A DNA stretch of 64,000 nucleotides, from IMG/VR virus record IMGVR_UViG_3300032334_001259, positions 186,001 to 250,000 of that record, one strand, 5' to 3'. Each line of letters starts with the position of its first letter. Within the stretch, counting starts at the first letter, position 1. Positions 25,347 to 39,381 of this stretch are shown here, piece by piece. The translations under genes were made by a program, and so were the position numbers. Under the pieces are notes generated by a model. The model saw nothing but the letters and a program-made list of their open reading frames with translations. It searched no databases and was not told the DNA's origin.

Positions 25347-25372
25347 AAAAGATGCCTTATGGATGGATAGGA

Positions 25373-26635
25373 TTAGGCATCTTCGTAGTAAGCACTTACA
25401 CCAAATGGTGGTTCAATGGTCTTGTTATACTTGTTATGGATAATCCAAACAGTATCACAATAGTTTTCATCACCCCAAGAACCAAATGGTTCACCGTCAG
25501 TAAACACAATCAATAGCTTTGGTGAAACATCTTCGTGCTTCATCCAGTTCCAATTCACTTCAAAGTCGGTGCCACCAAAACCTTTAGGTTCATAGTTTAC
25601 AAGGTCATCACCATCAGCAGTGGTATATTCTTGTGGGTTATGGACCTGTGTATCAAAGCACCACACTTTAATCTTGTAATCATCATATGATTGCATAATA
25701 CCGTTGATTTCACCAAAGAAATTATTCAACTGTTCATTGCTGATAGAACCACTGGTATCAATGGCAACACAGACATCAATAGCTTGGTCCTTACGCATGT
25801 TAGGCAGAACAAAACCATTGCTGAAATGTTTCTTATTAGGAACAGTCCAAGTGTAATCATTCTTAACAGTGGATTGGATTTGTTGTGTAATGAGTTCACG
25901 CCAGTTGATTTTAGGTTGTGTGAGTTCATTAATCATACGCTTGACATTGCCAGGAACATTGCCAGCGCCAGCAGATTGTGCGGCGGCAAGCATTGCTTCC
26001 TTAAACTCATCCTTAATCTTTTGACGTTCTTCTTGTGAAAGTACGGGACGACCTTTGCCATCCTTCTCACCATCACCTTCGCCGCCACCGCCCTTGCCAT
26101 CCTTGTCAGCATCAAGATGGTCATCAAGCAATTGGTCAAGCAAATCTTCAATGTTGATTTTGGTAGCGTTCTTGATCAAGTCATCATAAACTTGTTCAAA
26201 ATTCCATTCATCGTATTTGCGATCATGCAATACGGGAACAACAGTAATTTTTGCACCAAGGTTATACTTAATACAATCAGCATTAACAACATAATCCATT
26301 GCGATGTTGGCAATGTCACGTTGTTTGCCAATACCACGGTTGATATGGTCATATGCACAATGAAGCAATTCGTGACAAAACAAAAACATCATTTGGTTTG
26401 TAGGCAACTTGAGGATAAAGTCACTGTTGTAATAAAAGTGACGACCGTCAGTTGCGGCAGTGGTCAGCCAGCTATCGGCATTAACCAATTTTAGTCGCAT
26501 GGCAAGATTGCCGAAAAAAGGTTGTTTAAGAACCAGTGCAATACGAGCCTTGAGAATTGCTTGACGTGCGTTGTAATCTACCGTAGCATCAATAGTATCG
26601 GACAGTTTGCCACCACCCTGTTTAACTTTAGCCAT
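25373..26635 (-). CDS. Metallopeptidase-like plus vWA domain protein (DUF2201-like), partner of the MoxR ATPase
   Basis: TAATDG, HELLH (HEXXH), MIDAS DTSGS, GGTDF, FTDG; AGGAG SD before ATG 26635. Confidence 0.85.
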   Translation of the reverse strand: MAKVKQGGGKLSDTIDATVDYNARQAILKARIALVLKQPFFGNLAMRLKLVNADSWLTTAATDGRHFYYNSDFILKLPTNQMMFLFCHELLHCAYDHINRGIGKQRDIANIAMDYVVNADCIKYNLGAKITVVPVLHDRKYDEWNFEQVYDDLIKNATKINIEDLLDQLLDDHLDADKDGKGGGGEGDGEKDGKGRPVLSQEERQKIKDEFKEAMLAAAQSAGAGNVPGNVKRMINELTQPKINWRELITQQIQSTVKNDYTWTVPNKKHFSNGFVLPNMRKDQAIDVCVAIDTSGSISNEQLNNFFGEINGIMQSYDDYKIKVWCFDTQVHNPQEYTTADGDDLVNYEPKGFGGTDFEVNWNWMKHEDVSPKLLIVFTDGEPFGSWGDENYCDTVWIIHNKYNKTIEPPFGVSAYYEDA

Positions 26636-26659
26636 AATTAATCTCCTATCCATATATAC

Positions 26660-26687
26660 ATAATACCACAGAATTATATTATGTCAA
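26660..26687 (-). promoter_or_regulatory. Early promoter TTGACA-16-TATTAT
   Basis: Same architecture as the promoters at 27985, 28278 and 29087. Confidence 0.7.
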
Positions 26688-26690
26688 GAG

Positions 26691-26801
26691 AAAAAATAGG
26701 GGGGAAGTGTTGCGGCACTACCCCCCTAACCGTAGGAAAAATCACACTTTTTTCCTACCTTATCTCGCCCTCACTGTGATGGAGAACGATAGGGGCGAGA
26801 T
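26691..26801 (-). ncRNA. Candidate 3'UTR-derived structured RNA: three hairpins ending in an intrinsic terminator, with an anti-SD loop
   Basis: Stems ATCTCGCCC/GGGCGAGAT, GTAGGAAAAA/TTTTTCCTAC and TAGGGGGG/CCCCCCTA followed by T6. Confidence 0.5.
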
Positions 26802-27928
26802 TAATCACGCACTGCCGCAAGGATGAAGTCACCGTTTTTAGCATGATATTCCTTATAGTGCTTCATCTTGCTAGTCTTCATTGGCAACTTGTAGTTACGG
26901 AGAATAGTAGCAAGCATCATAACTTGTAATTCCGTATCCATGTTGTCAAGGAAGAAGCGGAACACGTTGTCAAGTTCATCGTGCCAAGCGGTATTCTCGT
27001 TGTCTTTCATACGTTCACCACCACGACGATCATAGCTATCCTTGAGTTCATAGCAACATGAAACCGTCAGCGAATACTTTGCACCAATGTCTTTCGCTTT
27101 GAGTTCCTTAACCTTACCGTTAAGAATATCGGTAGGATTAGGCATCTGGCTTGCTACCTTACGATGTGCGGCAAACTTAAGTGCAACACCTTCACCAACT
27201 GTACCAGACACAAGGTCATTCAGTTCAGTATCTACAAGGTCTTCTTGCAAGAGATCGCTAACAAACGACCACGAACGAGGCGTAGCAAACGATGCACCAC
27301 TTTGGCGAGGATCAAAGTTGAACAAATCATTCTTGTTGCAAGTTACATAAGCAACAACGTCAGGATTGATAGCATTGTTCAATGCCCAATCATTCCACGA
27401 CTCGAAGTCAACACGCAAGTTCAAGTGAACAAAACGGTTGGCAAGTGGCGATGGCATACGATACACAACACCACGGTCAGTGTCACGGTTACCAGCGGCA
27501 ACGATAACAACATTGTCAGGAAGTTCATACGTGCCAACACGACGATTAAGAACAAGCTGATAAGCGGCAGCTTGTGTTGCTGGTGCAGCAGAGTTCATTT
27601 CGTCAAGGAAAAGAACCACAACAGGATACTTGGCAGCTTCTTCTGCTGTAGGCAGATCGGGTGGAGCATTCCACATGGCATTGCCAACGGTTGGGTTGTA
27701 GTAAAGAACACCTTTAAGATCGGAAGGGTCCATAAGTGCAAGACGCAAGTCATACAGCTTGCCGCCCATGCTTTCACAGATATCGGCAACAAGTTCGGAC
27801 TTGCCAATACCAGGTGCGCCCCACAAGAAGATAGGACGTTTACGCTTCATACATACCATAATTTCACGCTTTGCAGAAGCGAGAGTAACGGTGCGCACTT
27901 CGGAAAGTGCCTCATTTGGTTTAGCCAT
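26801..27928 (-). CDS. MoxR-like AAA+ ATPase
   Basis: Walker A GAPGIGKS, Walker B LFLDE, AAGNR, PLANRF, TPRSW. Confidence 0.9.
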   Translation of the reverse strand: MAKPNEALSEVRTVTLASAKREIMVCMKRKRPIFLWGAPGIGKSELVADICESMGGKLYDLRLALMDPSDLKGVLYYNPTVGNAMWNAPPDLPTAEEAAKYPVVVLFLDEMNSAAPATQAAAYQLVLNRRVGTYELPDNVVIVAAGNRDTDRGVVYRMPSPLANRFVHLNLRVDFESWNDWALNNAINPDVVAYVTCNKNDLFNFDPRQSGASFATPRSWSFVSDLLQEDLVDTELNDLVSGTVGEGVALKFAAHRKVASQMPNPTDILNGKVKELKAKDIGAKYSLTVSCCYELKDSYDRRGGERMKDNENTAWHDELDNVFRFFLDNMDTELQVMMLATILRNYKLPMKTSKMKHYKEYHAKNGDFILAAVRD

Positions 27929-27957
27929 TGTAATTCTCCATCAGTTGACTATAACTC

Positions 27958-27985
27958 AATATAACACATTATTTGTAGTTGTCAA
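27958..27985 (-). promoter_or_regulatory. Early promoter TTGACA-16-TATATT with conserved leader GTTATAGTCAACTGATGGAGAA
   Basis: Leader is nearly identical to the one upstream of 28221. Confidence 0.75.
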
Positions 27986-28221
27986 GCAGAAATTTTTTGC
28001 AAATCTGCAAGCGCACCTTGCAACCAACGTGATTTCTGGACAAGTGCCTTACCAGACAATTCACCGTCACAGCAAAGGTTTTCGGGCGAAAGTTCAGCTT
28101 CAAGACTATCTTGCAATTCTGCAATATCACGACTTGTCAAATTATTGACATCCATTTGACGCTTGTTGAAAATAGCGTTCCAAACGTTCTGCTTATTGAT
28201 ATAGGCTTCAAGATTACGCAT
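27982..28221 (-). CDS. Small early hypothetical protein
   Basis: Own promoter and GGAG SD; LSPENLCCDGE motif. Confidence 0.65.
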   Translation of the reverse strand: MRNLEAYINKQNVWNAIFNKRQMDVNNLTSRDIAELQDSLEAELSPENLCCDGELSGKALVQKSRWLQGALADLQKISA

Positions 28222-28250
28222 CAATTTTCTCCATCAATTGACTATAACTT

Positions 28251-28278: not shown

Positions 28279-28922
28279 GCACTTTTTTCAAGACGAACAT
28301 AATGTAAACGGGTTACATTTTTGTCATCATGTTTATAGATACGTGCGGTCAAGCTGATTTTCTCGTTATTTTCCAAGCGGTTAGCATGTGGAAAACTTAC
28401 AAGATTTCCGTCAATTTCAGCCGTATGATACCATTTACCATAATTATGGCTATAAACGGCACTTACAATTGTTACGGTTGCCTTTAACCCATCACCAATT
28501 TGTCCAATATGACGGCTGTTTTCGCCAATTTGTGCAATCTTTTCAACGGCTTGCTCACGCTTTACAGCGTTATTATAGGAACTAGGAACGCTGGCAATAA
28601 CCGCCAAGTTACGGTAATCGTCAGTTTTAAATTCTTTTTGTTCTGTTAAAAGAACGCAAGTTTTCCAGTATTCTTGTAATGTGCCAGCAATAAGTTCAAT
28701 CATCTTGCTGTCAAGATATTCACAAATTTGTTCAGCAAATTCAATATCTTGCGGTAAAATTTTAAAGTTTTCCATTTCTGGATTAAGAAATTCACGCATA
28801 AGTGCGGCATTGCTTAATTCACCCTTGGTGTTGTCAGCATCATGCCGTTTGATATAACGACCATTTGTCCGTTGTGCCGCACAAGCGGCAGACATAGCAT
28901 GTTTCAAGCCAATAGTGGTCAT
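28275..28922 (-). CDS. Hypothetical protein, possible C-terminal OB-fold
   Basis: HIGQIGD...TVTIV...ARIYKH...TRLHYV; ATGA-coupled to the upstream small ORF. Confidence 0.6.
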   Translation of the reverse strand: MTTIGLKHAMSAACAAQRTNGRYIKRHDADNTKGELSNAALMREFLNPEMENFKILPQDIEFAEQICEYLDSKMIELIAGTLQEYWKTCVLLTEQKEFKTDDYRNLAVIASVPSSYNNAVKREQAVEKIAQIGENSRHIGQIGDGLKATVTIVSAVYSHNYGKWYHTAEIDGNLVSFPHANRLENNEKISLTARIYKHDDKNVTRLHYVRLEKSA

Positions 28923-29035
28923 TTTGCACCTTTATGCTTTGGTTTACGGGTATAGCTGCCCTTGCCCTTACGGGGGGTGACAATTTTTTGACGGTATTTG
29001 GGGTCAGCCAATGACTTGGCAATAAGGCTACGCAT
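28919..29035 (-). CDS. arfA: ArfA-like (alternative ribosome-rescue factor A) 38-aa protein, absent from the ORF track
   Basis: MRSLIAKSLADPKYRQKIVTPRKGKGSYTRKPKHKGAK; own promoter and GGAG SD; stop overlaps the next ATG. Confidence 0.7.
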   Translation of the reverse strand: MRSLIAKSLADPKYRQKIVTPRKGKGSYTRKPKHKGAK

Positions 29036-29059
29036 CGCTAGTTCTCCATCAATTATGCT

Positions 29060-32143: not shown

Positions 32144-32451
32144 TGACACACTGTTTGAAATACTGGACGACCATAAATGTCACGCCCAGCAAAGTAACGG
32201 TTACATACTGGTTGATAATATGGATCGTAATAAGGTTGCTGTTGATAATATTGTGGTTGGTTCATGCTGTTGAGCATACCACCAATGATAAGACCGCCAA
32301 CAAGTCCACCAAATAGAGCAGCACCAGCGTCACCGCCACCGCCACGATAGTATCCGCCACCACCATGATGGTGATGACCGTTCCAATCAGCATAAGATAC
32401 TGATGGCATTAAAGTAGCAGTTACTAATATAGCAGCAATAATCTTACGCAT
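32140..32451 (-). CDS. Small secreted/membrane glycine-rich protein
   Basis: Signal peptide MRKIIAAILVTATLMPSVSYA, His/Gly run, glycine zipper GAALFGGLVGGLIIGG, two Cys; GGAG SD. Confidence 0.65.
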   Translation of the reverse strand: MRKIIAAILVTATLMPSVSYADWNGHHHHGGGGYYRGGGGDAGAALFGGLVGGLIIGGMLNSMNQPQYYQQQPYYDPYYQPVCNRYFAGRDIYGRPVFQTVCQ

Positions 32452-39132: not shown

Positions 39133-39381
39133 ATTATCCGTAGATTGTAGGATACTTTCAATGATATCAAGTTCATCACGTGCCTTATCAAAGTCACGCT
39201 TCTGTGCCATCTTTACTGCTTTCTTAAGAAGATTTGGCTTAAGTTGCATTTCTTCTGCTACAGCGGCAATCGTATCATTAAGTCCACCAGTAAGTACTTC
39301 TACTTCGGTGGTTACGCTGATTGCTTCTGTAATAAGTTGTTTAAGTTTTGCACGTTCTTCATTGCTAAATGTTCTTGACAT
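39115..39381 (-). CDS. Small dsDNA-binding protein (T4 DsbA / GapR-like)
   Basis: 88-aa helical pattern LKQLITE...LNDTIAAVAEE...LLKKAVKMA. Confidence 0.55.
   Translation of the reverse strand: MSRTFSNEERAKLKQLITEAISVTTEVEVLTGGLNDTIAAVAEEMQLKPNLLKKAVKMAQKRDFDKARDELDIIESILQSTDNLQDSQ

Follow-up and report, generated by a model that had tools for sequence, protein, structure and literature searches.

Does the RNA hairpin that follows the stop codon of a MoxR-like ATPase gene in an uncultured jumbo phage pair with the ribosome-binding site of its own mRNA, or does it act in trans on the leaders of other genes? The window analyzed here is a stretch of 64,000 nucleotides (bases 186,001-250,000) of the IMG/VR virus record IMGVR_UViG_3300032334_001259, a 338,435-bp sequence with direct terminal repeats and 35.5% G+C, known only from metagenomes and without similarity at the DNA level to any deposited phage in a megablast search. 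A preliminary description, made from the sequence alone, had noted three consecutive hairpins on the minus strand downstream of an AAA gene, with the loop of the first being antisense to a leader motif shared by neighboring genes. It offered two readings, i.e., a feedback sRNA that shuts off a regulon of early genes or a 5'-3' UTR pairing. The features relevant to this question, all on the minus strand, are as follows.

26801..27928 (-), MoxR-like AAA+ ATPase gene (375 aa), the mRNA that carries both partners; Pfam AAA, AAA_3, and AAA_5 above cut-off, bpMoxR below cut-off; 47% identical to the ATPase of Pseudomonas phage PA5oct
27958..27985 (-), sigma-70-type promoter of the AAA gene (TTGACA-16-TATATT, with TG before the -10; 11 of 12 matches)
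27934..27943 (-), AAA leader motif UGAUGGAGAA containing the Shine-Dalgarno (SD) GGAG, 5 nt upstream of the ATG at 27928, the 5' partner of the proposed pairing; predicted partly single-stranded in the leader fold
26762..26801 (-), hairpin 1, a 9-bp GC-rich stem, (A)UCUCGCCC/GGGCGAGA(U), starting at the last base of the stop codon (TAA, 26803-26801), with a 22-nt loop (26792-26771) displaying GUUCUCCAUCA (26787-26777), the 3' partner (anti-leader/anti-SD)
26732..26758 (-), hairpin 2 (GUAGGAAAAA / UUUUUCCUAC), present only in a subclade
26691..26728 (-), hairpin 3 (26728-26697) plus U6 (26696-26691), the intrinsic terminator of the AAA transcript
28227..28236 (-), the same leader motif in front of a 79-aa gene (also counted as 80 aa; stop at 27982-27984, ATG at 28221), behind its own TTGACA promoter
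29041..29051 (-), leader motif UGAUGGAGAAC of the ArfA-like gene (28919-29035 including stop, 38 aa), 11 nt complementary to the loop
32456..32463 (-), AUGGAGAA in the leader of a gene for a 103-aa Gly/Tyr-rich secreted-looking protein (ATG at 32451), only 8 nt complementary
25373..26635 (-), partner gene (421 aa), DUF2201_N metallopeptidase plus VWA-like domain, with its own promoter (26687-26660) and the leader site AUGGAUAGGA at 26653-26644
25348..25384 (-), a second element of the same design, a hairpin spanning the stop codon of the VWA-like gene, whose 17-nt loop carries UCCUAUCCAU (25372-25363); the terminator 25346-25321 follows

We first assessed whether the structure and the complementarity are real, and the observation in the preliminary description was confirmed. 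The 3' region folds with an MFE of -49.5 kcal/mol (z = -6.2), and 0 of 200 shuffles fold as well. Hairpin 3 is a GC-rich hairpin followed by a U tract at the end of the transcription unit, although a simple terminator scan missed it because of its internal mismatch and long apical part; the next promoter starts at 26687. The transcription unit thus runs from the promoter at 27985 to the terminator at 26691, and the anti-SD sequence is located in the 3' UTR of the mRNA whose SD it matches. The loop sequence GUUCUCCAUCA is the complement of the leader motif UGAUGGAGAA(C), which occurs as TGATGGAGAA in the AAA leader (27943-27934; 10 nt), in the leader of the 79-aa gene (28236-28227; 10 nt), and, extended to 11 nt, as TGATGGAGAAC in the leader of the ArfA-like gene (29051-29041), whereas ATGGAGAA (32463-32456; 8 nt) precedes the ATG at 32451. 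The ArfA-like assignment was confirmed by a profile match to PF03889 (E = 1.7e-9, above the family cut-off). Each of the AAA, VWA-like, 79-aa, and ArfA-like genes has its own TTGACA-N16-TAnnnT promoter with TG before the -10. The exact 10-mer occurs 4 times in the window, against 0.10 expected, and 0 of 100 shuffles reach 4; in the whole 338,435-bp genome it occurs 8 times, while a control word (the pattern read backwards) occurs 0 times. Seven of the eight copies lie 4-6 nt upstream of an ATG and downstream of a TTGACA-N16/17-TAnnnT promoter, and the eighth is the inverted copy in the loop of hairpin 1. With one mismatch allowed, the count in the window is not significant (7 against 4.3 expected), so the signal lies in the exact matches. 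A scan of the whole window with the curated covariance models of Rfam 15, AbcR included, returned no match at the gathering score.

To find out which of the possible partners is conserved, we scanned IMG/VR and metagenome contigs with the AAA protein, which gave about 170 loci (numbered here with the prefix L), 133 of them unique. In the main clade (84-100% AAA identity), hairpin 1 follows the stop codon in every locus that extends far enough. Its stem (CTCGCCC/GGGCGAG) and its loop (CATCGTTCTCCATCAGTGA) are practically invariant, although the sequence behind them is replaced or varies: hairpin 2 is absent from most main-clade relatives, and the terminators at this place differ freely. In the subclade that has hairpin 2, hairpins 2 and 3 show seven pairs with compensatory changes, as assessed among 7 relatives. 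In most of the main clade, the loop is complementary to 12 nt of the AAA leader. In the window's own phage, however, a CA insertion in the loop shortens the contiguous match from 12 to 10 nt, and in the relative L050 the own-leader match is only 8 nt.

The more diverged members of the same clade are decisive. Every lineage of the window's clade (62-100% AAA identity) has a GC-rich hairpin just after the AAA stop; the stems differ, and each loop is complementary to that lineage's own AAA leader, as listed below (leader / loop).

Main clade: ACTGATGGAGAA / TTCTCCATCAGT, 12 nt
L036: TTTGATGATGGAG / CTCCATCATCAAA, 13 nt, stem TGCCCCCC
L090: TGATGATGGAG / CTCCATCATCA, 11 nt, stem TAGGGCCCAT
L089: TTGATGGAG / CTCCATCAA, 9 nt, stem TTGCCGCCC
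L114 (65% protein identity): TTGGAGGTGC / GCACCTCCAA, 10 nt, stem GGGGGC
L115/L116 (62% protein identity): TGGAGGTGCC / GGCACCTCCA, 10 nt, stem differs

The base just 5' of the common core is C, A, or T in the leaders and G, T, or A in the corresponding loops. Consistently, a loop-by-leader matrix is strongest on its diagonal, each loop matching its own type of leader best, and shuffled loops reach the observed run in 0 to 75 of 20,000 trials. For a test at the level of lineages, single-linkage grouping by shared 11-mers merged too many loci (15 groups) and was replaced with clustering on protein identity (80%), taking one median representative for each of 32 clusters. The longest own complement between the leader (-32 to +3) and the 80 nt after the stop is 10 nt or more in 5 of the 32 clusters, against 0.36% of 842 cross-cluster pairs; for 9 nt or more, the figures are 5 of 32 against 1.5%. 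The lineages are not fully independent, a problem that this cluster-level test reduces but does not remove. Outside the clade, further lineages have 9-12-nt own complements of unrelated sequence, namely, L188 (TGATTGGGAGA), L174 (GACTCTCACAT) and L158, L142 (AGGAGCAACTT), L119 (AGTTAGGAGCA), L180 (GGACACAGCC) and L150 (AACACAGCCC), L056 (ATACGCCCTATG), L054 and L155, and L134. All of them fall in the translation initiation region, covering the SD, the spacer, or the start codon, and the 3' copy lies mostly in the apical loop of a strong hairpin behind the stop. On the AAA tree, the window's clade is monophyletic and every member has the element, whereas elsewhere its distribution is patchy. 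About half of the AAA protein clusters show nothing, and neither do the closest cultured relatives by protein, PA5oct, Phosso, and Atu_ph07, which have plain terminators and leader/3' complements of only 5-7 nt. Collectively, the complementarity is kept when the sequences change, which indicates that it is under selection.

This pattern also bears on two unlikely readings of the locus. The preliminary description had itself set as a refuting condition that the motif proves to be a DNA operator acting in either orientation, and we considered in addition a pair of short inverted repeats flanking the gene that would serve recombination or inversion. Two copies of one word do flank the coding sequence in inverted orientation, and their covariation would also be expected if a protein recognized the word in duplex DNA. 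However, the downstream copy is always inside the loop of a hairpin whose stem is kept by wholesale compensatory change, between a stop codon and a terminator and far from any promoter, whereas the upstream copy always overlaps the SD or start codon rather than the -35/-10 region. No contig among those examined shows the gene inverted, and the matched words are unrelated between lineages, which would require a new protein specificity each time. Although this evidence is indirect, a role as duplex DNA is very unlikely. Equally improbable is that the hairpin is a protein-binding or decay-protecting 3' structure and that the complementarity is a by-product, for example, a relic of an inverted leader copy. 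3' hairpins commonly stabilize mRNAs, and in the main clade the loop is conserved beyond the paired part, but a by-product would not be regenerated with new sequences in at least eight lineages, nor would it appear independently on the neighboring VWA-like gene with that gene's own leader sequence.

In the window's genome, own 5'/3' complementarity is not a general property. Among 391 ORFs, only the AAA gene and its VWA-like partner have a non-low-complexity own complement of 10 nt or more. The hairpin at 25384-25348 (dG -30.3 kcal/mol, z = -6.9) presents UCCUAUCCAU, complementary over 10 nt to the VWA-like gene's leader site AUGGAUAGGA. This second element is conserved only in the nearest relatives L009-L011, and at 8 nt in L038; a survey of the VWA gene across all clusters revealed no enrichment beyond the nearest relatives.

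We next asked whether the loop might instead, or additionally, act in trans. In this alternative, the 3' end of the AAA transcript (hairpin 1, with or without hairpin 2, plus the terminator; 60-110 nt) would be released or act in place, and its anti-SD loop would repress a regulon of early genes that share the UGAUGGAGAA leader, among them the ArfA-like ribosome rescue factor. Seven leaders in the genome carry the exact 10-mer, and the best predicted duplex is with another gene, a 139-aa gene at G000 79701 (15 bp with one G-U, -24.2 kcal/mol), while the ArfA-like leader pairs over 11 nt (-19.0 kcal/mol, with low opening costs) and the site before 32451 forms a weak duplex of -10.7 kcal/mol. 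The whole 19-nt loop is nearly invariant in the main clade, more than the 12 nt needed for the AAA leader. In most of the seven leaders, the motif sits in the loop of a short hairpin whose 3' arm abuts the AUG, with different arms (CAAUU/AAUUG, the pair seen in front of the 79-aa gene, CUGUU/AACAG, and UUGUU/AACAA), which would suit kissing (loop-loop) contacts. One hint for trans action comes from L050, where the loop (CGTCTCCATCC) matches the ArfA-like leader (GATGGAGACG, 10 nt) better than its own AAA leader (8 nt). There, the loop and the ArfA-like leader differ from the main clade at two positions that stay complementary (GGAGAAC/GTTCTCC becomes GGAGACG/CGTCTCC), while the AAA leader does not follow.

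Other results do not favor this reading. In the 86-kb genome fragments that hold L036 and L090, TGATGGAG occurs in the AAA leader, in the loop, and otherwise only inside coding sequence, so that no other leader carries the motif; in L114-L116, L188, and others, the matched word occurs once in each orientation per locus. The partner that is conserved is therefore the AAA mRNA's own initiation region, and a trans-acting regulon is possible only in the main clade. In an energy-based target search over 391 start regions, the number of duplexes at or below -14 kcal/mol (21) lies within the range for shuffled loops (2-29) and cannot define a regulon. The sharing of the motif is explained by a repeated promoter-leader cassette, since the leaders have more than the motif in common, e.g., AGTTATAGTCAA(C/T)TGATGGAGAA and the upstream AAAAAAGTGCTTGACA...TATATT. 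Some main-clade relatives have ArfA-like leaders with only 8 nt of match or none, and a search for the ArfA family in the genome fragments of L036, L089, and L090, which are only 3-25% complete, found no member, so that ArfA covariation could be examined only in L050 and the main clade. No internal promoter and no evidence of processing were found. No public RNA run contained this DNA, and a comparison with four metatranscriptome contig sets at 80% likeness recovered only scraps of the conserved ATPase core from other organisms (26.9-27.9 kb of the window, inside the coding sequence), with nothing over 26.69-26.80 kb and no informative ends or joints, which is no evidence either way for a separate ∼110-nt species. 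The interpretation in the preliminary description is therefore supported in part: the 5'-3' pairing is strongly supported by covariation, whereas the sRNA regulon is not established and, as the main function, appears unlikely.

We thus favor, with moderate confidence, the view that hairpin 1 is a cis-acting 3'-UTR element of the MoxR-like ATPase mRNA, in which a GC-rich stem starting at or within about 16 nt of the stop codon presents a single-stranded loop that base-pairs with the translation initiation region (SD and flanks) of the same mRNA species, either within one molecule or between copies. The analysis itself demonstrates the hairpin, the complementarity, their conservation, and their covariation across lineages; everything functional, including the pairing in vivo and the direction of its effect (repression, stabilization, or activation), is inferred from sequence and by analogy. 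The estimated energetics are favorable, with a duplex of -16.4 kcal/mol against opening costs of 1.4 and 2.3 kcal/mol (the latter, approximately, for the AAA leader). RNAcofold of the leader plus the 3' UTR does not form the loop-leader helix, but loop-loop and pseudoknotted contacts are outside its model. In this view, the loop would occlude the ribosome-binding site once the full-length transcript exists, blocking 30S binding, so that translation would be limited largely to the cotranscriptional period, or the mRNA would be marked for decay, as for icaR (PMC3868564); as a putative RNase III substrate the duplex is only 10-13 bp, although stacking on the 8-13-bp hairpin stem is conceivable. 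Because the stem abuts the stop codon, terminating ribosomes should melt it, which would couple the switch to ongoing translation. In the main clade, the loop could also pair in trans with about six other early leaders, including that of the ArfA-like gene, as a secondary, lineage-specific extension.

Alternatively, the pairing may activate or stabilize rather than repress, by closing the mRNA into a loop that protects the 5' end from 5'-end-dependent decay or hands terminating ribosomes back to the start. In L036 the paired stretch begins about 2 nt from the predicted 5' end, the hairpin abuts the stop codon so that terminating ribosomes must open it, and a 5'/3'-UTR interaction that controls ribonuclease action is described for Bacillus subtilis hbs mRNA (PMC5737220). 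However, the paired stretch always covers the SD, spacer, or start codon, and pairing there blocks 30S binding in all studied cases (icaR, PMC3868564). This possibility cannot be excluded but is improbable. A bolder and still unlikely scenario is that a family of uncultured freshwater jumbo phages builds a timer into individual mRNAs, each transcript being translated mainly while it is being made and silenced (or cut) once complete, with terminating ribosomes transiently reopening the switch. In the main clade, the same loop would have been recruited as a trans-acting anti-SD regulator of a cassette-defined set of early genes, thereby tying ATPase expression to manipulation of host ribosome rescue through the phage ArfA-like factor.

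The proposed mechanism is that of the icaR mRNA of Staphylococcus aureus, where a UCCCCUG motif in the 3' UTR pairs with the SD region of the same mRNA, blocks the initiation complex, and creates an RNase III substrate (PMC3868564). The present element shares with icaR the location of the anti-SD sequence and a complementarity under selection, whereas a block of initiation and RNase III cleavage are only inferred here. It differs in that it belongs to a lytic-type jumbo phage of uncultured freshwater hosts, sits in the apical loop of a hairpin directly at the stop codon within a short 3' UTR of 60-110 nt, and is kept by covariation across lineages with unrelated sequences. Long-distance 5'-3' interactions also keep type I toxin mRNAs inert (hok fold-back inhibition; Helicobacter pylori aapA1; PMC9841398, PMC6733600), the 3' end of the full-length mRNA shutting off translation so that nascent and completed transcripts differ in activity. 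Those mRNAs, however, are activated by 3' processing and paired with an antisense antitoxin RNA, whereas here there is no antitoxin, the protein is an ATPase, and a terminator hairpin follows the element. 3'-UTR-derived trans-acting sRNAs and mRNA-mRNA regulation (PMC5502269), such as the Listeria hly 3' UTR acting on prsA2 (PMC8722363), likewise involve a conserved seed in a 3' UTR that shares the mRNA's terminator, with possible pairing here to the leaders of other mRNAs (ArfA-like and others), but in our case the conserved partner is the own leader and the seed is in a hairpin loop rather than a free 5' stretch. AbcR-type and staphylococcal C-rich-loop sRNAs, the former cited as an example in the preliminary description, mask SD sequences of the GGAG type by means of a pyrimidine-rich, CUCC-containing loop; the element described here is part of an mRNA 3' UTR and matches no Rfam family in sequence or structure.

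A 5'-3' pairing of this kind is known so far from only a few bacterial mRNAs, the icaR report calls its case singular, and, as far as our literature searches reach, it has not been described for a phage gene. The evidence here is evolutionary rather than experimental: one orthologous gene keeps the arrangement through complete turnover of stem, loop, and leader sequences, the kind of covariation usually available only for structured RNAs. If confirmed, it would show that 5'-3' mRNA closure is a selectable and portable regulatory design in phages, portability being supported by the version that the neighboring VWA-like gene has acquired, and it would supply a set of natural compensatory variants for testing the mechanism and a simple part for gene expression engineering. 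The possible link to a phage-encoded ArfA-like protein is a second, weaker lead.

Finally, the repeated leaders are reminiscent of the promoter-early stem-loop cassettes (PeSLs) of T4-type phages (PMC2839356, PMC4122927), in which small early genes are each flanked by a stem-loop or terminator and a near-identical sigma-70-type promoter. The window's genome has this arrangement, i.e., a near-identical early promoter repeated in front of several small genes and preceded by stem-loops, with the repeated unit extending here into the shared leader, which explains why several genes carry the motif. PeSLs are described as recombination modules, not as partners of an antisense loop, and the phage studied here is not T4-like by the evidence at hand. 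Within these leaders, the ATG inside UGAUGGAG opens a mini-ORF whose stop overlaps the main start in 4 of 7 cases, but a role for this upstream mini-ORF was set aside because no SD lies in front of it.

The DUF2201/VWA-like gene that neighbors the AAA gene has its own version of the 5′-3′ device, which maps to two stretches of the window.

25348-25384, minus strand: hairpin spanning the stop codon of the DUF2201/VWA-like gene
26644-26653, minus strand: complementary stretch in the leader of the same gene, including the SD

The 17-nt loop of this hairpin (UCCUAUCCAU) is complementary to 10 nt of that gene's own leader. This second arrangement is conserved only in the nearest relatives. A different conserved pair of islands was found at the relatives' loci L093-L100 (about 55% AAA identity), where UCACACG lies in the leader, upstream of the SD, and CGUGUGA just after the stop (7 nt). 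Both islands are invariant while the surrounding bases vary, and may represent another form of 5′-3′ pairing that does not cover the SD. In the relatives' loci L036, L089, and L090, two further hairpins follow downstream of hairpin 1, of which one has GATCTC/GAGATC-type arms, whereas the other is terminator-like and shares the string GCGGG(C)TAGGGGG(G)CTG. A three-hairpin 3′ UTR may be ancestral in the clade. At locus L024, the last ∼60 bases of the contig run back on themselves as a reverse complement after the terminator loop, which looks like an assembly fold-back artifact rather than biology.

The shared leader motif was inspected in the leaders at window positions 27934-27951 and 28227-28244 and in those at positions 39335, 317916, 79489, and 79686 of the whole phage genome (G000). 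In these leaders, GAUGGAGAA tends to sit in the loop of a predicted short hairpin whose arms differ between paralogous leaders (CAAUU/AAUUG, CUGUU/AACAG, and UUGUU/AACAA) and whose 3′ arm abuts the AUG. The AUG inside UGAUGGAG also opens a reading frame of 4 to 7 codons, the stop of which overlaps the main start in 4 of 7 leaders. A further gene of this region encodes an ArfA-like protein.

28919-29035, minus strand: gene for a 38-aa ArfA-like alternative ribosome-rescue factor

The assignment of this phage-encoded protein rests on a match to PF03889 above the cut-off. Its TGA stop overlaps the ATG of the next gene, and homologues occur in most main-clade relatives, in two sequence variants.

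Inspection of promoters across G000 revealed many TTGACA-N17-TAnnnT promoters that are followed by an ATG only 6 to 9 nt after the −10 hexamer (e.g., at 217708, 251095, 251999, 256616, 269460, 301020, and 322520, partly outside the window), suggesting a sizeable class of leaderless mRNAs in this phage. Strong promoters at about 41213 (minus strand) and 103354 (plus strand) of G000, both outside the window, are directly followed by what look like tRNA genes. Finally, the leader motif also appeared in sense orientation at G000 positions 256193-256240 on the minus strand, likewise outside the window (the window coordinate would be about 70,200). There, a 10-bp hairpin (GCAGUGCUGC/GCAGCACUGC) inside or at the end of a minus-strand gene displays UUGAUGGAGA in its loop, possibly as an internal ribosome-binding site presented in a loop.
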